Source: Lepidodermella squamata
Taxonomy: Eukaryota > Animalia > Gastrotricha
Assembly: GCA_047495785.1 (NCBI GenBank)
Contig: JBLDXI010000001.1
Span: 3,968,001-4,032,000, forward strand
DNA length: 64,000 nt
Direction: 5' to 3'
In this document: positions 40,836-59,971 of the stretch, one piece after another
How the letters are laid out: each line of letters begins with the position of its first letter
Position numbering within the stretch: the stretch's first letter is position 1
Position numbers and translations under genes: made by a program
Notes under the pieces: generated by a model
The model's database searches: none
What the model saw: the letters and a program-made list of their open reading frames with translations, nothing else
What the model was told of the DNA's origin: nothing

Positions 40836-43393
40836 ATGGCAGCAGCAGGAGCATTTCTGCGCTTCCAGGTCATTCATCTAGACCTGGACAGTCAAGATGT
40901 GGTCATTGCTGTTGCAGTGAAAGAAGGCGAGGGAGGCGCCCTAGGTAAGCTGAAAGGAACTGTCAATAGTCAGGAGTTCATGTTAGTTTACTTATCACGC
41001 TACAGTTCAGCACAAACCGACGTTTTTTCGAAAATTTGGTGAATGGTTTGATTGTCACATCAGGTACGACTACTTGTCAAAAGGACATCTCTAGGTTTGA
41101 CACCGTTTGATCCTTAGACCAGGGCGTGTGGTGGAACTCATGCTACAAGACATTGAATCGGAAGACGGCAAAGAGCCAAAGATCCGAGCACATTGCACTT
41201 TGCTGTTATCTGCCATTTCAAAGAACTGTGACGTTGATGGATCGGTCGCAACTGTTCCGGTATGAGTTTCGTCTTTGAATTAAGCGAGTTGACCATGAGT
41301 TATATGTTCTCAGATTGTGTTGACACCTGTGGGCAAGCTCACTTTGCAAGTCAAGTATTTCCAAGGAAAGCAAGTTGCTTCTGGAACTGTTAGACAGACC
41401 AGCAGTCCTGAACAACCTCGTATGATTCACCCTATTGGCCACAACTTTCTCTTTTCTTACTGTGCTATCGTTTCACAGCTCTCCCTCAGCCCAAGCGCGG
41501 TAAAATTGTTCGCAGAAATGCTCAGAAACTGCCAAAAGTCCACCTGGTCAGCGGACATCACTTTGTCGCCAAATTCTTCAACCAGCCAGCATTTTGCTCT
41601 TTTTGCAATGAATTCTTGTGGGGTTTTAACAAGCAAGGATATAACTGCGAACGTTAGTTTCAATTCTATTCCCACCAGCTGTAGGATCAATAGTTTTATT
41701 CTAGTGTGCAATGTAACTGTTCATAAGCGCTGCCATGATAAAGTGCTTGATGCATGCACGAAAAATACTGCCCAACAATCAGATCTTGTTGTAAGTTTTC
41801 TCACGGTCGAATATTCACCGCATGTAACTTTGATTTTCAGAATAAGAGCGTTGAGCGGCTTGGTTTTGCTGTGCCGCACATGTTCAAGTCGAAAAACTTC
41901 CTACGGCCAACATTTTGTCGCCATTGCGGTCAGTTGCTGTGGGGTCTATTCAACCAAGGCAAAGAGTGTAAGAAATGCGGAGCCGCTGTTCACCACAAGT
42001 GCGCAGATATCGCCGCGAAAACTTGCGGCGTCGATATGCGTCAGATGGTTGCAATTCTTAATGAAATTCGTGTTCAGCGCCAAGGCTCGACGTCAAGCAC
42101 GCGACCTCTTTCCATGTCTGAGAACTGGGATGGGCAATCACTTGCTGTAATTTTTGATTATCTGAGGAATCGTGGCTTTTATTGAGTTTTTTCTAGAATG
42201 ATGACGAGGATTTAGTGAAACCAATCTACGAGGATCCGTCGCAGTTTTTGGAACTATCCAACTCCGGTAATTCTGGCTCTCGTGCAAGTCAAATGGTTGC
42301 CTCGAAGAAGCTATCACTCGCCGATTTCGACATTGTGAAACTGCTTGGAAAGGGTAGTTTTGGCAAGGTATTCTTAGCGCGGCGTAAAAACGACACTCGC
42401 GAGTATTACGCCATCAAAGCCATGCGGATTGACTTCATTCTATCGTCAAATGACACGGAAACTACCCGAGTCGAGCGAACTGTTTTGACTAGCAACACAA
42501 ACGCGAACGCGCCTTTTCTTCTCCACATGCTTTGCACATTTAAAAGTGACTCGCATTTATGTAAGATTACATATTTTTATTTGATGACTCAAATTGCTCT
42601 GGTCTTTCTAGTCTATGTGTTGGATTTTCTGCCCGGCGGTGATCTGATGTTTCATCTCCAGCAATCGGAGCGATTCGATTTGAATCGAACTCGATTTTAC
42701 GCGTCTGAAATTGTTTGCGCTCTGCAATTTCTGCACCGGGAAAGCATCATTTACCGCGATTTAAAACTCGATAACGTGCTTTTGGACCGAGAAGGCCACG
42801 TTTGCCTCGCTGATTTCGGCATGTGCAAAGACAAAGTGAACGACAAGAATCGAGCGTCGACGTTTTGCGGAACTTTGGACTACATTGCGCCGGAGATAAT
42901 CGAGTCGAAAGAATACACGTTCTCAGTAGATTGGTGGTCATTTGGCGTGTTGGTTTTCGAAATGATAACCGGTCAGACGCCGTTTTATGGCGACACCGAG
43001 GCTGAGCTGTTTGAGGAAATTAAAAACCCAACCCTGCCAGATATGGGTCTTGTTCCAGACCCGGCTTGTGCCCAAATGCTTCAGGCGTTATTTCAGCGCG
43101 ATCCCATGCGTAGATTAGGGTCTCCTACGAGTGGTGAGGGTGAAATTAGACGACAGCGGTTCTTCGAACCAATTGAATGGCCGCGGTTAGAACGCCGTCA
43201 AATCGCGCCGCCGTTTGTGCCTAGTTTACACGGTCCGGATGATGTCCGGTACTTCGAGCGGGATTTCACCCGAGCGACTGTTCGAATTTCTGCCGGCGGT
43301 GATTCGCGGCTTATGAACACCATACCGAGAGACATGTTCGCGAAATTCAGTGTCATGTGTCAGAATTACAAGCCGGCTGTTCCGCTTACGTGA
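40836..43393 (+). CDS. PRKCD: Novel protein kinase C, delta/theta type (C2-like, pseudosubstrate, C1A, C1B, AGC kinase), multi-exon
   Basis: RRNA pseudosubstrate; HHFVAKFFNQPAFCSFCNEFLWGFNKQGY; PHMFK..PTFCRHCGQLLWGL; LGKGSFGKV, YRDLKLDN, DFGMCK, ASTFCGT.DYIAPE, YTFSVDWWSFG. Confidence 0.9.
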
Positions 43394-53729: not shown

Positions 53730-54266
53730 TGTTGAAAAAAAGTGTGAGCTATAGGTAATGATGAATTCATGGTTTACATCTGGTTTATATGCTGCTCAAC
53801 TTGACGCATATCATGACCGCGACCTTAGCGATGGAGAAGCAAGGTATCCAATCTTTGTTTTAAACTAAAGCCGAGGCCAGTTCTGGGATATGTGTGGTTT
53901 ACAAAGCATCTTAAACGAGATCAGAAACAGAAGAAAGGCGAGCCCGTTTTACTAAAATTAAAAAGTAGAGAGAAACATATCGCTCAATGACCCAGCCCTC
54001 TTCCCGAGTAATACGGTTGACCGTGAGCTTCTTGCGTTGCCTTTTGTCACCGCTGCATACTGCATACTTAATAATAGTATATTTTTGTTGCTGGTTCAAA
54101 ATAACAACATAAAGGCAATTTCCTTTATTTTTTACATGATATCTATCAGGTTAGTTTTACGACTGTCAAAACATTTCACTCCAAGCACGTGATTTGACAA
54201 CGCTTAAGTTTAACAACATACACTCAAGAGCGCATCTTTAGTACACAAATCATCGTCACAAAGCTA

Positions 54267-55431
54267 TCATGTGCAATTGGCTTTGAAGACTATAGAAATC
54301 ATGAGCGCTGACATTGTCATGGCGTACAAGGATTGTCGGTTGTAGACGCTTTGGGCGCCTGAAGCGCCGCGCGTCCGCAGTAGCGCAGCCGTTGATTTAT
54401 AGCCGGCGTACATGGCCGTCGATAGAGCCGTCGCTCCTCGATTGTTTTTCGCTTCGATATTCGCGCACCGATCGAGCAGCAGCTCAACAACATCGGTGCG
54501 ACCCGCAAATGAGGCAGCTATCAAAGCAGTTGTACCGTCATTGTTACGTGCTTCGACCTAAAATATTGTTGAAATGAAATATGTGATCATAGTTTTCTAA
54601 GCTAGTTTTTGTTTTTAGTTTCATTCCCCCTTTTCAGGGGGTGAGCCGAATCCCGGAGGTACTGCAATACCGGGCCGACTCGTGGACGGGGTCCAGCAAG
54701 CTGGCTGCTCCCGCCCGGCTAGCCAAAAATAGGGCTAATATCGTAGGCCCCACATGGAGGCCGTTGTAGATATTAAACTACAAAGAACAGATACTACACT
54801 TTGATCATAGCCAAAAAGGCCGAGAAGCGATACTTTTTTGAAAAAAAATTTTTGACGGCGTTCTGGACTGAGAATCTCTTCGATTAGCACTGGCATTTGC
54901 ATATGCGCACCGTGCACTGGCTCATTAAGTGACGTTTGTAGTGTGAATAATCGCTAAGCTCCACCCACTGGCACGCGCACACTTAATATGATTCATAAGA
55001 TCGCGTGTCAGTGGTAGAACGCGCGCACTGACAAGTGATAAGCGGGTTTAAGCGTAATTTCGCACGCGCTTCCAGTTGAAATTTACCTTGGCTCGTGCGT
55101 CCAGTAGCATTTTGCAGGTTTCATAACGCCCAGCGAATGCGGCGACGATAAGCGGCGTTGACAGTTCAAAATTGCGCGCCTCAATATTTGCACCTTTGTC
55201 CAGCAGTAGTTTGGCAATAGCTGTATGTCCCAGGTAGCAGGCGAAAATCAACGGCGTCGCACCGCTGTTATCTCGCGCTTCGATATTGAGACCGCCCAGA
55301 TTCAACAAATTAGCTACCATATCGATTCGATTGTAGAAAATCGCCGTGAACAGCTCATCATCGTTTACCCCAGAAACTGTATGCAGCATTGCGACAATTG
55401 CTGCCGTCAAGATGATCGGGTAAAATCGCAT
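54267..55431 (-). CDS. Signal-peptide ankyrin-repeat protein A with GPI-like tail, 211 aa, 2 exons (55431-55087, 54557-54267)
   Basis: MRFYPIILTAAIVAMLHTVSG; about 5 ANK repeats (GATPLI.A..G..IAKLLLDKGANIEARN); RGASGA followed by a hydrophobic C-terminus; phase-0 intron. Confidence 0.88.
54639..54831 (-). ncRNA. U2: U2 spliceosomal snRNA, about 193 nt
   Basis: Minus strand reads ATCGCTTCTCGGCCTTTTTGGCTATGATCAAAGTGTAGTATCTGTTCTT; branch-recognition GTAGTA; stem IIa TGTAG-TTTAATAT-CTACA; Sm site ATTTTTG; stem IV CCCGGTATTGCAGTACCTCCGGG. Confidence 0.96.
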
Positions 55432-55697
55432 TTTATTTCTGAAACTAGTGTTGTGGTTTAAAAATGAATTTATGCCCTTGAAATTCTTTATTTACTTAAA
55501 GCTGATGTTCTTGATACCTGCGGCGTAAGATATTCGGTTTATTTTCAGTGTAAAACGCTCGTAAACACCGTGCAATAAACAATATCAGCCACTTGGGATA
55601 TTCGAAACGAGTACCATTTCACCTTGAAAACATTACTAATTCACTTTTACTCAGATTGCGTGCAGGTTAGGTTTGCGTATGAAATTTTTTTACAGCG

Positions 55698-56339
55698 TCC
55701 TAGTGATTCGACAAAGGTATTAGGGATTGGTGTGCCAATTATTAGGTTATTAGGTTTGCTTTTCGAAAGCTGATCGATTATCTCGAAAACAACACTTCTT
55801 CTACACTTTAGCCACTGTTACTGAAACCATGATTTTCGGTATTTTCAATGGCTTCCTACTAGCCAGAACCTATTGTCCGCCTTCATATTGGAATCCGACC
55901 GTTTCTGAAACTTTGTTTCGATACACCATGGTTGTGATCTCATCGTGTTGCTATTTGCTGAATGCAGGCTTTAGGGAAACCGAATTCGAATATGTAACTC
56001 GACGGCTGGAAAAGTAATCACGCTTATTTTCTATTGGGTTGAAAAATGCGAGTTATTACATTTTTCAGGCGCGCCGACAGCTATACATTTGGTGATTTTG
56101 CCCAAGAAGAATCGCAGACGATCGCGGCTGTGAATCTCGAAGGCGGCACATACAGCGGTCTCGTACGCCAACGGACAGTGGGCAATCTATCGACAGATAA
56201 TGGTTCTTCAACCGTCGAATCTACTCCATTAGTCACTGGATCAAATATTCATGTTGAAGAAGGACGGAGTGATTCGGCAGGAACCTTGAATTGCAATGAT
56301 GCTGAAATATCCGAGGAAATCGATTCAACGACAGGGTGA
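55698..56339 (+). CDS. Possible small membrane protein (partial model, about 3 exons)
   Basis: ORFs 55829..56017 and 56046..56339 are joinable by a short GT-AG intron; hydrophobic segments then an acidic tail; start not located. Confidence 0.4.
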
Positions 56340-56651
56340 TTGCCTTCCAACTTCGAATCTACCTATCGTTAGCGTCGTTGAATAACTAGGATTTAGGCTG
56401 GTTTACATCCGTTTCAAGGCGACGGGTGACAAGTAAAAAGTCTTTTGTTTTGCCTCTTCATTCACGTTAAAAAACTGGTGTTCAGCCTATTTTCTAGCGA
56501 TCAGGCACGCGACTGACGTGGCAAAGACGCGAAAAGTTAGTTTTATCATTATGTGTTACTATTTCCGGCACACTGTTACGGCGCGCAAGTCGCGCTATGT
56601 GGCCAAAACAAATTTTCATTGGCAAATCATTTTATTCGAAATTGGCGAAAA

Positions 56652-57275
56652 TCATAGTTGAGAAAAGAATATCAAGGCTAGGAATAAGCAGAATAGACTG
56701 ATTGCGTCATGATGTAGCAAACTAGACGCCCCAGAGGCGCCGCGACTCCTTAAATAATCAGCAGTGTCCTTAAAACCGGCCTTCCTCGCAACAGCCCAAG
56801 CTGTTTGCCCATCATAATTTTTCGCCTCAATCCTCGCTCCTCGATCTAAGAGTAACCGGCACGTATCCGACTGACCCGCTGCAGCAGCTGCTATCAACGC
56901 TGTATTGCCGTCCTTGTTAACAGCCTCTATTTGAGCCCCTTTAGCGGTTAGGGTATCACAAGCGTCAGTTCGACCAGCAGAGGCGGCTGCGATCAGCGCT
57001 GTAGACATGTCGTAACGCCTGGCCTCTAACTCAGCCCCACGTTCGATGAGCATATTCACGATTTTCGAATTGCCGACGATACTTGCGACAATCAAGGGCG
57101 TCGCGCCACCCGAGTCGCGTTGCTCCAGGTTGATTGCATCAGTTGCGAGTAAAGCTTGAACTCGGTCCACGTTGTTGTCGGTTATTGCTGAGAAAATATT
57201 ATCGCTTGTTGATTGGGAGGACGCAGAACCCAGGTAACACAAAAACAGCAGAAAAGATGTGATTAAAAGCGACAT
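56652..57275 (-). CDS. Signal-peptide ankyrin-repeat protein B with GPI-like tail, intronless CDS
   Basis: MSLLITSFLLFLCYLGSASS; about 5 ANK repeats; RGASGASSLLHHDAISLFCLFLALIFFSQL-stop. Confidence 0.88.
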   Translation of the reverse strand: MSLLITSFLLFLCYLGSASSQSTSDNIFSAITDNNVDRVQALLATDAINLEQRDSGGATPLIVASIVGNSKIVNMLIERGAELEARRYDMSTALIAAASAGRTDACDTLTAKGAQIEAVNKDGNTALIAAAAAGQSDTCRLLLDRGARIEAKNYDGQTAWAVARKAGFKDTADYLRSRGASGASSLLHHDAISLFCLFLALIFFSQL

Positions 57276-57671
57276 TGGCCATGCAGCAACTTCACAAACC
57301 ACCTCTAGATTACGCGAAGTACAACTTTCTTGATCAAATTTTAGAAAAATTCAGTTTACCTGTGGTATCAAATCTTGCCTGTCGTAGTATGCACCTACTG
57401 ATAGGTAAATAAATGACAAGAAACGCTGCTTTAGTTCAAGTCTTCATTGACGGCTACGCGAAACTTCGCTGCGTAGTCCATTCATCACTCAGCTACGTTG
57501 ACTGCCGTACTCTCTCATTCATTCATATTCATGCGTCTCCAGTATTGTGACAGAACATTCACACATGTATCTCGCCCTCAAATGAATGCAATAATCGCTC
57601 GATTATGACATATAACGTCGTATTTATTGAATATGTATAAATTGAGCGTATTTCATGAATGTAAAAATCGA

Positions 57672-58304
57672 TCAATGAGTCATGAACTCGAATATTGTTT
57701 GGACATCTGTAACAAAAGCAGTGGTACTTGCTGCTAGAATGAAGCTCAAAACCCGCGGAAGAATATGAGGCGCTCCAGACGCGCCGTGGATCAACAGCAT
57801 ATCGGCCATATCCAAGTACCCCAATCGTCTCGCAACCGCCCAAGCTGTATCTCCATCGTAACTCAACGCATTTGTATCCGCGTTAGAATCTAACAGAAAT
57901 TTGCTCGTCTCCAGTTTGCCGCCGTGGGCTGCTGCGATTAACGGTGTCCAACCGTCTCGATTTCTAGCTTCGATCGACGCTTTGAAATCGAGAAGGACAC
58001 GGCATACATCAGTGCGACCGGCGAATGCTGCGTTGATAAGGGCTGTGGATAGCGAGGTGTCCCTTGCTTCGATACTAGCACCGTGTTCCAGCAGCATTCT
58101 TACGATGTCAGTATACCCGAGGTAACTTGCGACTATCAGCGGAGTTGCGCCATTTACGTCACGAATTTCAGCGTCGTAGCCCGATTCCAGCAGGGTAGCA
58201 ACGTTTTCAAGCCGATTATTGTAAATCGCGACAAAAAGGTCGTCATTTGCTCCAACAGTATTAAGCAACGCTGCAATACTAAGTGTCACATATAATTCGC
58301 GCAT
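57672..58304 (-). CDS. Signal-peptide ankyrin-repeat protein C, intronless CDS
   Basis: MRELYVTLSIAALLNTVGA; about 5 ANK repeats; HGASGAPHILPRVLSFILAAS tail. Confidence 0.88.
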   Translation of the reverse strand: MRELYVTLSIAALLNTVGANDDLFVAIYNNRLENVATLLESGYDAEIRDVNGATPLIVASYLGYTDIVRMLLEHGASIEARDTSLSTALINAAFAGRTDVCRVLLDFKASIEARNRDGWTPLIAAAHGGKLETSKFLLDSNADTNALSYDGDTAWAVARRLGYLDMADMLLIHGASGAPHILPRVLSFILAASTTAFVTDVQTIFEFMTH

Positions 58305-59971
58305 ATTTTTGTTAAATTTATCAATCCATCGAGCGTATTTTTAGCTGAATGGAAATGTGTAAAGCAATGGATTCTGAAATGAATTATATATGATTGTTTA
58401 CAGCCACGCGCTTGTTTGTTTGCAAGGGAGTGTGGACCGAGAGGGCTATTTTCGAATCACCGGAAAGCACGCAACTTGAGATTAGCTTCAACTTTTAGTT
58501 TATTTAAGTCTCATTGTGCTGCGGCGAATGCCAAATCGATGATTCTTTGACCAGCAATGTGCGGATAAGTTGTAACATTCTCGAAAATGTCAGCTATGAT
58601 AAACTCAATTGTGATCACTGCCTCAAACTCAATCATTCCTATTTTGTCATGGTGTTGGGGCACCAAAACCGAGCTCCATTTTAGGGAACTCTACTCACCG
58701 TGTGAGGGAATGACGGCTGAAACATGCTTTCAACGACACATTCAGTAAAATAGCTGATGTTCAAATGCTACAAACTGCAGAGACGAAATGAGCTGCCCAA
58801 TTGAGGGAACAAAGTGTGTTAAGCCGACTTCATCAACATTTGCTCTCAGACCTAGAACATGGCCGACGTTGCTAGAGAATAAAAGCGGTCTGTTTAGCAG
58901 AAATTAATTTCTTCAACTGTTTAATCCGTGACTAAAAGTGGCATTTTTCAACCAAGATAGCATTTTGCATGGACATTGCATTCAATTTTTAACGTTTCCC
59001 CTTTTCGTGTATATCTGAACGCTTGTCTACAGCAGCATTCGTATAGTATGTAGGCTAATTTATCGATTTCCATACAATTTAAAGAATCTTTCATGCAGCA
59101 AGTACTACGCTTGCAGCACATACAGGTCGAAAAAGAGGTCGCAGTACATAGTAACACATTAGAGTGATGAGAATGTGCTCATTTATTTGCCAACTGATGT
59201 ATTGCTTTGAGATTTTTATCACCTTTCAGTTGAACAAAAAAAGGTCATGCCATTCATATTCAATGATGAGTACGTGATTACTCGATTCCACCTATAAGCA
59301 TTCTTCTTTCATTGAAGTAAACTTGTGCCGCTTTCCTACCAGGTGTTTAGCAGCATCGGCTTTCCGCTCGGTGTAAGCATAGCTAAAAGCTTGATATTTA
59401 GGTAATAGACTGCTGCTATTTACCCTAAAAAAGTATGAGAGCTACGACACTTTGGCGGCGAATCGCGTAATCATCATTAGCTGCAGTGTGTGACAAGTGA
59501 TGTGCGTTATATATTCCACGCCGTCTATATTCCACGCCGCCTATAGGCTCAATAGCAAACCGTGCGTATTATTTTACCTGTGCGTTTTTTTTTGAATTAT
59601 TTGCGCATCACGGCCGGTGAGAAAAAGCTTATTCGCTGTTCGTTATATACCACATCAATGTATACAGTGACAAGGGGCGATATGATGAACACAGCCTAGA
59701 GCGCTACGCCGCCAAAAAACCACGGAACAAGCGATTATTGCGTCACGGTTCTGTCTAACCCGCTAGACATGGGACCATCTTATGCCCATATCCAGCCAAG
59801 ACAAGTGCCTATTATTTGCGCCATACCGGCCACGGCGCATTGTCTCAATTCGAGCAAATAAGTAGCTTTGTTTTTTTGTAATATTCATTTTTTGTATCTT
59901 CGTTGCCGCGTTATATAGGCTGTCTGAATACTTTAAGTGAAAAAAATTGAAGGCTTGACTTTTATTGCGGC

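Follow-up and report, generated by a model that had tools for sequence, protein, structure and literature searches.

Tandem ankyrin-only proteins with predicted signal peptides and GPI-type C-termini in the gastrotrich Lepidodermella squamata

Three ankyrin genes and their structures

The window analysed here is a stretch of 64,000 nt from Lepidodermella squamata contig JBLDXI010000001.1 (GCA_047495785.1, positions 3,968,001-4,032,000). Three paralogous genes (A, B and C) lie on its minus strand between 54267 and 58304, and their products of 207-211 aa share pairwise identities of 44-46%. An earlier note on this DNA had reported three tandem paralogs of about 210 aa at this location, in agreement with the 210, 207 and 211 aa found for A, B and C. 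No further copies of the family were detected within the 64-kb window by tblastn. The genes and their features are collected in Table 1.

Table 1 Features of the ankyrin gene cluster, with positions given in window coordinates.
Feature	Position	Strand	Details and basis
A TATATAA box, putative promoter element	58384..58390	-	80 nt 5' of ATG; read from sequence
A CDS	57672..58304	-	210 aa + stop, single exon; ORF, Pfam ankyrin families, AF2 model
A predicted cleavable signal peptide (residues 1-19)	58248..58304	-	n-region Arg, hydrophobic core, site between VGA and ND; rules
A five-repeat ankyrin domain (residues 20-175)	57780..58247	-	Pfam, PDB matches, AF2 model
A GASGA (residues 174-178), candidate omega region	57771..57785	-	adjoins last ankyrin helix
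A spacer and C-terminal hydrophobic segment (residues 179-210)	57675..57770	-	rules, model
A AATAAA poly(A) signal	57623..57628	-	44 nt past stop codon; read from sequence
B CDS	56652..57275	-	207 aa + stop counted from ATG, single exon
B predicted signal peptide (residues 1-20)	57216..57275	-	hydrophobic core 1-18, (-3,-1) sites at 17-20
B GASGA (residues 179-183)	56727..56741	-	alignment, rules
B spacer (7 residues), 14-residue hydrophobic run and 3 residues	56655..56726	-	mean hydropathy 2.9
B AATAAA poly(A) signal	56631..56636	-	16 nt past stop codon; read from sequence
C exon 1	55087..55431	-	residues 1-115: predicted signal peptide 1-21, N-cap, repeat 2, most of repeat 3
C intron	54558..55086	-	529 nt, phase 0, GT..AG; read from sequence
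U2 snRNA gene, complete, within C intron	54636..54831	-	same strand as C; Rfam RF00004
C exon 2	54267..54557	-	residues 116-211 + stop: repeats 4-5, GASGA, hydrophobic tail
C GASGA	54354..54368	-	in exon 2
C AATAAA poly(A) signal	54124..54129	-	X1 contig end 19 nt downstream

The earlier note had overlooked the GT..AG intron that splits C. Joining the two exons restores a full five-repeat protein of 211 aa, with no codon gained or lost; the intron has no counterpart in A or B. The U2 snRNA gene it houses matches the Rfam model at 159.4 bits (gathering score 46) across model positions 1-192 of 192. In the case of B, the mechanical ORF begins at a GTG located 9 codons 5' of the ATG, and an out-of-frame ATG occurs 7 nt ahead of the start codon. 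A scan for sigma-70 promoters and terminators gave background levels only, as expected of eukaryotic DNA.

Transcription was inspected using X1, a contig-only run that was taken to be RNA-like from its patchy coverage (its RNA nature is a guess). B appears to be transcribed: an unspliced X1 contig (56641-57246, depth 77) spans its frame except for the first 29 nt, and intergenic DNA is left uncovered. Coverage of A is confined to about 184 nt (57838-58021) at a depth of 6-9. For C, no X1 coverage of exon 1 was found, while a contig at 54105-54675 spans exon 2 and continues unspliced into the intron; no spliced C joint was seen, leaving a spliced C mRNA without support in this sole RNA-like run.

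Elsewhere, the window encodes a PKC-delta-like kinase with at most 51% identity to chordate, mollusc, annelid, arthropod and nematode kinases and 65% identity to an animal kinase in ENA metagenomes, as well as a DUF229 protein whose relatives point to animals in general.

A DARPin-sized ankyrin fold

Pfam returned ankyrin families only for the three proteins, far over the gathering scores. Ank_2 (cut-off 27.3 bits) scored 98.6 bits for A, 80.6 for B and 60.3 for C exon 1, with corresponding values of 94.9, 72.0 and 63.6 bits for Ank (cut-off 21.1). In the AlphaFold2 model of A, residues 21-175 form five helix pairs whose ten-residue blocks have pLDDT values of 83-97; values drop under 50 for residues 1-17 and 180-186 and are about 55 in the C-terminal helix. 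The five helix pairs agree with the estimate of about five repeats per protein in the earlier note. A, B and C are members of the ankyrin repeat superfamily.

Comparison of the A model with N3C DARPins using Foldseek gave a probability of 1.00, with an RMSD of 1.1-1.5 Å over 152-157 aligned columns and a TM score by target of 0.92-0.95. Like these designed proteins, A consists of an N-cap, three internal repeats and a C-cap, with the same size, the same expected groove and varying surface positions. Designed consensus ankyrins show 33-41% identity, and the earlier description of the repeats as near-consensus was overstated. An Ile replaces the His of the canonical TPLH tetrapeptide in repeats 2-4 of all three proteins, IEA(R/K) takes the place of DVNA, and position 4 of repeat 3 is not the usual glycine (L/M-S-T), in contrast to DARPins. 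TPLI is a known tolerated variant that is also present in bacterial matches, and ankyrin membership by profile or fold is unaffected by it. A, B and C further differ from DARPins in being natural genes with a predicted ER signal peptide and GPI-type tail.

Residues following the TPLI/TALI motif do vary as had been noted, with a pair identity of 0.17-0.50 at repeat positions 10 and 12-14, and the helix-2 surface positions 21, 22, 26 and 29 are equally variable. Pair identity is 35% at binding-face positions versus 57% (Fisher p=0.0008). We considered this variability as a sign of diversifying selection and rejected it, as it corresponds to the generic ankyrin pattern of the fold. Since dS is saturated or undefined, dN/dS is unusable on A, B and C. 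Third-position identity is 25-35% and dN about 0.6, with all reading frames intact; the duplicates are ancient yet intact.

Terminal segments and predicted topology

Both termini lie outside the ankyrin fold, and their sequences have diverged almost completely between paralogs while retaining the properties of a signal peptide and of a GPI signal. These features were judged by classical sequence rules. At the N-terminus, each paralog shows n-, h- and c-regions as well as (-3,-1) sites, the latter between residues 19 and 20 in A, at 18-20 in B and between residues 21 and 22 in C, with acidic residues following. The A leader falls outside every PDB ankyrin match. The hydrophobic signal peptide that the earlier note assigned to each protein thus fits the classical rules, as a prediction. 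The uncharged cores measure 14-18 residues, below membrane-span length. Such a short core with acidic residues behind it suggests, by the positive-inside rule, that the domain is translocated.

At the C-terminus, the GASGA motif is identical in A, B and C, and the candidate omega, omega+1 and omega+2 residues all belong to the small-residue set in 3/3 C-termini. It is followed by a spacer of 5-10 residues and an uncharged hydrophobic run of 14 (A), 14 (B) or 15 (C) residues, past which 12, 3 and 5 residues are left, respectively. The small-residue motif and hydrophobic C-terminal segment previously noted in all three proteins therefore agree with the GPI rule set (small omega and omega+2, polar spacer, hydrophobic end, no long tail), A being borderline. 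In A, the candidate omega sites are residues 174-176 with spacers of 6-8 residues, and the uncharged run (185-198, mean hydropathy 2.0) is modelled as a low-confidence helix outside the fold. The 12 residues behind it are in part charged, with Asp and Glu among them. By these rules, the tail of B would come closest to a classical GPI signal and that of A would depart from it most; a short membrane span would fit A too.

The ambiguity in A bears on an alternative with the same topology, whereby the C-terminal segment serves as a single span (type I, minimal cytoplasmic tail), or is removed to give a secreted protein. The hydrophobic run of A, with 12 residues after it, could near span length if neighbouring residues are included. 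However, uncharged runs of only 14-15 residues, the ends of B and C 3 and 5 residues past the run, and an invariant GASGA at the right distance in 3/3 proteins make such a peptide anchor quite improbable.

Ankyrin repeats are among the commonest protein-binding modules, and those of eukaryotes are overwhelmingly cytosolic. By that general rule, the domain would remain in the cytosol, through a hairpin, a reverse signal-anchor combined with a tail anchor, or mRNAs unlike the ORFs. The domain has neither disulfide pairs nor glycosylation sites, and X1 provides no transcript 5' ends, so that an upstream exon is possible. Against this, the N-terminal cores are below span length, and an Arg before and Asp/Glu after them favour translocation of the domain. 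Within their exons, A and C have no in-frame start codon upstream of the ATG, and the B frame is covered unspliced. A start at the next in-frame Met past the leader (residue 70 in A, 74 in B and 39 in C) would truncate the fold. We consider a cytosolic domain very unlikely.

Our favoured reading, which we hold to be probable with some reserve, is that A, B and C are exported five-repeat ankyrin-only proteins with a GPI-type anchor. With a signal peptide and a GPI-attachment signal by the rules, the ankyrin domain is expected on the lumenal or exterior side, and it is probably displayed outside the cell. We infer the following sequence of events from the layout. The short, cleavable signal peptide would bring the chain into the ER, where the DARPin-sized domain would fold inside the lumen. 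GPI transamidase would then replace the C-terminal signal with a glycolipid anchor, attached to the GASGA Ser or to a residue adjoining it. The resulting mature protein, about 155 residues long, would reside on the outer plasma-membrane leaflet, and for want of a stalk its C-cap would sit directly against the membrane. A partner may be bound via the usual ankyrin groove, with different partners for the diverged paralogs.

N-glycosylation sequons are absent from the 472 mature residues. Shuffles that preserve composition contain 3.7 (P=0.014), and the sequon density of other ankyrin proteins predicts about 1.5. This depletion weakly favours the export explanation, being suggestive against the shuffles and weak against real ankyrin proteins. 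Disulfide cysteines and glycosylation sites are common in extracellular proteins; the lack of paired conserved cysteines and of glycosylation sites in the domain counts against export. Passage of an ankyrin scaffold through the secretory route is feasible, as illustrated by a functional DARPin fused to a LAMP-2B exosome-display scaffold (PMC7847680). The missing stalk between fold and omega site makes access for the transamidase and for ligands uncertain.

The closest functional analogues are GPI-anchored LRR receptors such as VLRB of agnathans, by analogy and not homology. Like the predicted layout here, these combine a signal peptide, a capped repeat solenoid, a predicted GPI site and a hydrophobic tail, and for VLRB GPI anchoring has been demonstrated via PI-PLC release (PMC6050320). 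In contrast to VLRB, the solenoid here is ankyrin instead of LRR, Pfam identifying ankyrin families only and no LRRNT/LRRCT caps. A, B and C also lack a Thr/Pro stalk, disulfide-bonded caps and somatic assembly, being germline genes with three copies here. The earlier proposal of natural DARPin-like GPI surface binders is partly supported, by the rule-based layout and the DARPin-sized fold; GPI attachment, surface location, a ligand, and a role towards microbes, self or gametes form its putative part.

Relatives and origin of the family

No protein with the same layout was found outside this genome, in sequence searches of limited sensitivity. A leader and a hydrophobic tail occurred together in 0/58 ankyrin proteins of similar length retrieved by word search. 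Word-index searches with A and with the C-terminal 68 residues of B returned generic ankyrin matches only, as did the ESM Atlas and NCBIfam. A profile search with the A+B alignment against 1.84 billion representative proteins gave 494,511 matches and was set aside as a guide to relatives, as the best 150 of these were all ankyrin proteins of 980-5,901 aa. There was no record of the exact A and B sequences in the public assemblies queried, and no relative was retrieved when bacterial genomes, archaeal genomes and JGI metagenomes were scanned with the cap motifs, or metagenomes with the repeat-3 DNA pattern. A literature search for ankyrin proteins that are exported, extracellular or GPI-anchored turned up no description from an animal, and the papers retrieved on signal-peptide, periplasmic or surface-exposed ankyrin proteins dealt solely with bacteria and plants. 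The family seems confined to this animal lineage.

It is conceivable, if on balance doubtful, that the ankyrin repeat was recruited wholesale in this lineage as an extracellular recognition scaffold, with germline GPI-anchored DARPin-like receptors as its minimal form and diverged paralogs that each recognise another external ligand, for instance a microbe, a toxin or a conspecific cell. This would add a third solenoid or domain type, besides Ig and LRR, to animal surface recognition, and possibly a recognition repertoire so far undescribed, in a group of animals that has received little study. To our knowledge, extracellular ankyrin binders (DARPins) are credited to engineers and not to nature. 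If real, the family would show that neither disulfides nor glycans are needed for using the fold in the secretory pathway, and would offer natural templates for cell-surface DARPin display.

A separate possibility concerns origin, and is compatible with the surface-display explanation: descent by horizontal transfer from an ankyrin protein that bacteria export, to the periplasm or as a lipoprotein, and whose Sec-type leader would have served as an ER signal from the start, with the GPI tail acquired later. A GPI tail is a eukaryotic feature. The best natural matches of A are bacterial, and A and B are intronless. P0002 and P0004 (metagenomic) begin with a hydrophobic leader, and their repeats are of the same TPLI/TALI and GAxIEA subtype as those of A, B and C (Ile for the TPLH His, GAxIEA for GADVNA); the P0002 gene is located on a 203-kb contig, amid densely packed genes for transporters and enzymes. 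Exported bacterial ankyrin proteins such as AnkB do exist (cited in PMC10294975). In these, an export signal precedes ankyrin repeats that work outside the cytosol. AnkB-type and P0002-like proteins differ from A, B and C, however, in lacking a GPI-type tail and the family cap motifs, in being longer (about 360 aa) and in an identity of only 33-45%, the best match reaching 49% over 120 residues. No orthology to an AnkB-type protein in a bacterial gene context was found.

Designed consensus ankyrins score above the bacterial matches (125 bits), so that the similarity mostly reflects closeness to consensus. The bacterial proteins that share the motif are TIR-ANK proteins or are 260-890 aa long, with other architectures, and the family-specific cap motifs occur in 0/185,579 bacterial and archaeal species genomes. 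We compared 12 bacterial loci containing the shared IEAxNxxGxT[PA]LIAA motif and rejected a bacterial donor as demonstrated, given heterogeneous architectures and at most 45% identity over the domain. A GC3 of 0.47-0.54 and a codon adaptation of 0.78-0.82 match those of neighbouring animal genes, and C carries a spliceosomal intron. On this evidence, we regard a bacterial origin as unlikely. The context of the locus is animal, with its U2 snRNA gene, GT-AG intron and AATAAA signals.

Gene structures and ankyrin fold

Three tandem ankyrin paralogs (A, B and C) occupy window positions 54267-58304, as the earlier note had claimed; the gene structures, Pfam searches that returned ankyrin families only (well over threshold for each protein) and the five helix pairs modelled for A all support this assignment. 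Joining the C exons in phase 0 yields a protein of 211 residues that aligns to A and B with no codon gained or lost, and pairwise protein identity within the family is 44-46%. A tblastn search of the 64-kb window found no further copy. An AATAAA signal is located 3' of each of the three genes, and a TATATAA box occurs 80 nt upstream of the A ATG. The window is animal nuclear DNA; besides a U2 snRNA gene, it has genes for a PKC-delta-like kinase, a secretin-type GPCR, a DUF229 protein and a P-type ATPase.

Features of the paralog locus and other window elements (a slash marks the splice boundary)
Feature	Window position	Strand	Description
Paralog A	57672-58304	minus	single ORF, 210 aa
Paralog B	56652-57275	minus	single ORF, 207 aa from ATG
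Paralog C exon 1	55087-55431	minus	3' end AAG/GTAAAT
Paralog C intron	54558-55086	minus	only intron in the family
Paralog C exon 2	54267-54557	minus	preceded by TTTTAG/
U2 snRNA gene	54636-54831	minus	complete, Rfam 159 bits
Upstream ATG	57280-57282	minus	out of frame, 7 nt upstream of B start codon
ORF pair between B and C	55829-56339	plus	62 and 97 aa, the first hydrophobic
High-copy repeat	56364-56640		directly 3' of B
PKC-delta-like kinase exon	42215-43393	plus

B may require leaky scanning past the upstream ATG, depending on where its transcript begins or is trans-spliced.

Sequence matches in the PDB (ankyrin-1 and designed ankyrin repeat proteins, DARPins) span A residues ~22-176 and never include the termini. 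The AlphaFold2 model of A contains five helix pairs between residues 21 and 175, with a pLDDT of 83-97 per ten-residue block; values fall below 50 at residues 1-17 and 180-186, and are ~55 for a terminal helix at 182-209. Foldseek superposes the A domain on DARPins of the N3C type (N-cap, three repeats, C-cap) over 152-157 columns, with an rmsd of 1.1-1.5 Å, a TM-score by target of 0.92-0.95 and 33-41% identity. In size and fold the domain thus merits the description "DARPin-like", while "near-consensus", used of the repeats in the same note, is generous given that level of identity. By fold, A, B and C are ordinary members of the ankyrin superfamily. Within the family repeats, the TPLH histidine is replaced by Ile and GADVNA by GAxIEA(R/K). 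Repeat 3 has L/M-S-T instead of G-x-T, and its helix 2 holds the single conserved cysteine of the family.

Predicted targeting signals and topology

N- and C-terminal targeting signals were judged by classical rules. All three N-termini possess an uncharged hydrophobic core of 16-18 residues (small-residue c-region included), below the length of a membrane span. An Arg is located ahead of the core in A and C, small residues occupy the -3/-1 positions (A, VGA/ND at 19/20; B, sites at 17-20; C, VSG/VN at 21/22), and acidic residues follow the candidate cleavage sites in each protein. Such an arrangement typifies a cleaved signal peptide, predicted to translocate the downstream chain. At the opposite end, an invariant GASGA begins at the Gly-Ala closing the last ankyrin repeat and supplies candidate omega and omega+2 residues of the small set. 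Spacers of 5-10 residues lead into uncharged hydrophobic runs of 14, 14 and 15 residues in A, B and C, leaving 12, 3 and 5 residues respectively. The putative GPI signal is textbook in B, good in C and borderline in A. Alternatively, the tail could be a peptide span rather than a GPI signal; the ankyrin domain would then likewise lie on the lumenal or outer side. The earlier interpretation is supported in part: by these rules, a signal peptide followed by a GPI-anchored extracellular domain is a plausible topology for all three proteins, the A tail being its borderline element, and we lean towards extracellular, membrane-tethered ankyrin-only proteins.

Outside GASGA, leaders and tails have almost no residues common to the paralogs despite keeping their hydrophobic character, which argues for selection on the hydrophobic property itself. 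The word search gave 58 ankyrin proteins of similar length, and not one of them combines a hydrophobic leader with a hydrophobic C-terminal tail. The new element would be an ankyrin-only protein with predicted secretory and GPI-type signals.

The predicted layout is that of a GPI-anchored solenoid receptor such as agnathan variable lymphocyte receptor B (VLRB), which combines a signal peptide, an LRR solenoid, a predicted GPI site and a hydrophobic tail, and for which release by PI-PLC has been demonstrated (PMC6050320). In contrast to VLRB, the present proteins have ankyrin instead of LRR repeats and no stalk. Exported bacterial ankyrin proteins do exist, for example periplasmic AnkB (cited in PMC10294975), and in bacterial toxin systems ankyrin repeats act as immunity proteins (PMC3482391). 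DARPins are functional as fusions to a LAMP-2B exosome-display scaffold (PMC7847680). Searches of the literature on signal-peptide, periplasmic and surface-exposed ankyrin proteins found only bacterial and plant papers, and no description of an animal exported, extracellular or GPI-anchored ankyrin protein was found in the literature searched.

Relatives and the question of bacterial origin

A word-index search with A gave 58 generic ankyrin matches, the best of them covering 60% of the query with 42% identity. The C-terminal 68 residues of B gave six matches sharing only LLLDRGARIEA-type words, and an exhaustive profile search was dominated by giant ankyrin proteins. When 185,579 bacterial/archaeal species genomes and JGI metagenomes were scanned with the family-specific cap motifs, no relative was found; metagenomes likewise gave nothing for a DNA pattern taken from repeat 3, and the exact A and B proteins had no record in public assemblies. 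As far as these searches reach, the family is lineage-restricted.

The compact repeats had also been suggested to reflect a bacterial origin. The best natural matches of A (P0002 and P0004) are indeed bacterial, P0002 lying on a 203-kb contig between closely spaced genes for transporters and enzymes, and both share the TPLI/TALI + GAxIEA subtype of the family as well as N-terminal hydrophobic leaders. However, designed ankyrins outscore every bacterial match, and the twelve bacterial loci that carry the motif in common with the family, most of them from Acidobacteriaceae, reach 33-45% identity and encode TIR-ankyrin fusions or longer proteins. In addition, the codon usage of A, B and C (GC3 0.47-0.54, adaptation index 0.78-0.82) is that of the animal neighbour genes. 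We consider a bacterial origin possible but unlikely; it would in any case be old and leave the functional reading unchanged.

Acidobacteriaceae/Terracidiphilus MAGs encode proteins of ~420 aa that combine a TIR domain at the N-terminus with an ankyrin array at the C-terminus (L014:2000-3271; also L006, L008, L013, L016 and L017), the TIR domain having been checked in L014 only (TIR_2, 72.9 bits). Their repeats are of the TALI + GAxIEA subtype, as in the animal family. Relatedness searches place the animal itself no more closely than as a divergent invertebrate. The PKC-delta-like kinase exon has at most 51% identity to kinases of named animals. A protein encoded on ENA metagenome contigs (L001-L003), where two more kinase ORFs come after it, reaches 65%, indicating that a kin micro-animal is present in environmental assemblies.

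Age, surface variation and transcription

Third-codon-position identity among the paralogs is 25-35%, which equals random expectation, and dS is saturated or undefined with dN at ~0.6. The duplications are therefore old, and the persistence of three intact 210-codon frames since then implies purifying selection. Residues after TPLI/TALI had been reported to vary between repeats and paralogs, and this holds. In repeats 2-5, pairwise identity is 35% at the six sites that are randomised in DARPins, compared with 57% elsewhere (Fisher p=0.0008). Helix-2 surface positions 21, 22, 26 and 29 vary equally; the variation is the ordinary ankyrin-fold pattern and does not demonstrate diversifying selection. 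The 472 mature residues of the family contain no N-x-S/T sequon, against an expectation of 3.7 from shuffles (P=0.014) or of ~1.5 if sequons were as dense as in other ankyrin proteins; this hints, weakly, that glycosylation may be avoided.

Coverage was taken from the two sequencing runs holding the stretch, X1 (2015; its RNA status is a guess) and X2. X2 covers the whole stretch at ~100x and is probably the DNA used for assembly. X1 coverage is patchy, with zero depth in intergenic stretches, and its contig over C exon 2 (54105-54675, depth 31) ends 19 nt beyond the C AATAAA signal; both observations argue that X1 is RNA. A further X1 contig (56641-57246, depth 77) contains the B reading frame minus its first 29 nt with no splice, and within A there are small contigs at 57838-58021 with a depth of 6-9. 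No 5' transcript end was seen for A, B or C, so the concern that extra exons might change the topology is only partly answered.

The U2 gene lies inside the C intron on the same strand. The X1 contig over C exon 2 continues unspliced through intron sequence as far as the 3' part of U2, and neither exon 1 coverage nor the exon-exon joint was seen in X1, which gives no support for a spliced C mRNA; the exon 2 transcript may thus be read-through from the U2 gene rather than C mRNA. X2 depth reaches ~9,800 at the U2-bearing intron, compared with ~100 in single-copy DNA, which marks U2-like sequence as highly repeated in the genome. The high-copy repeat next to B reaches an X2 depth of ~19,000 versus ~100, with many loose-ended contigs and "opposite strand" joints at 56440/56473. 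A repeat search found no inverted repeat inside it; a dispersed mobile or foldback element is the probable explanation.
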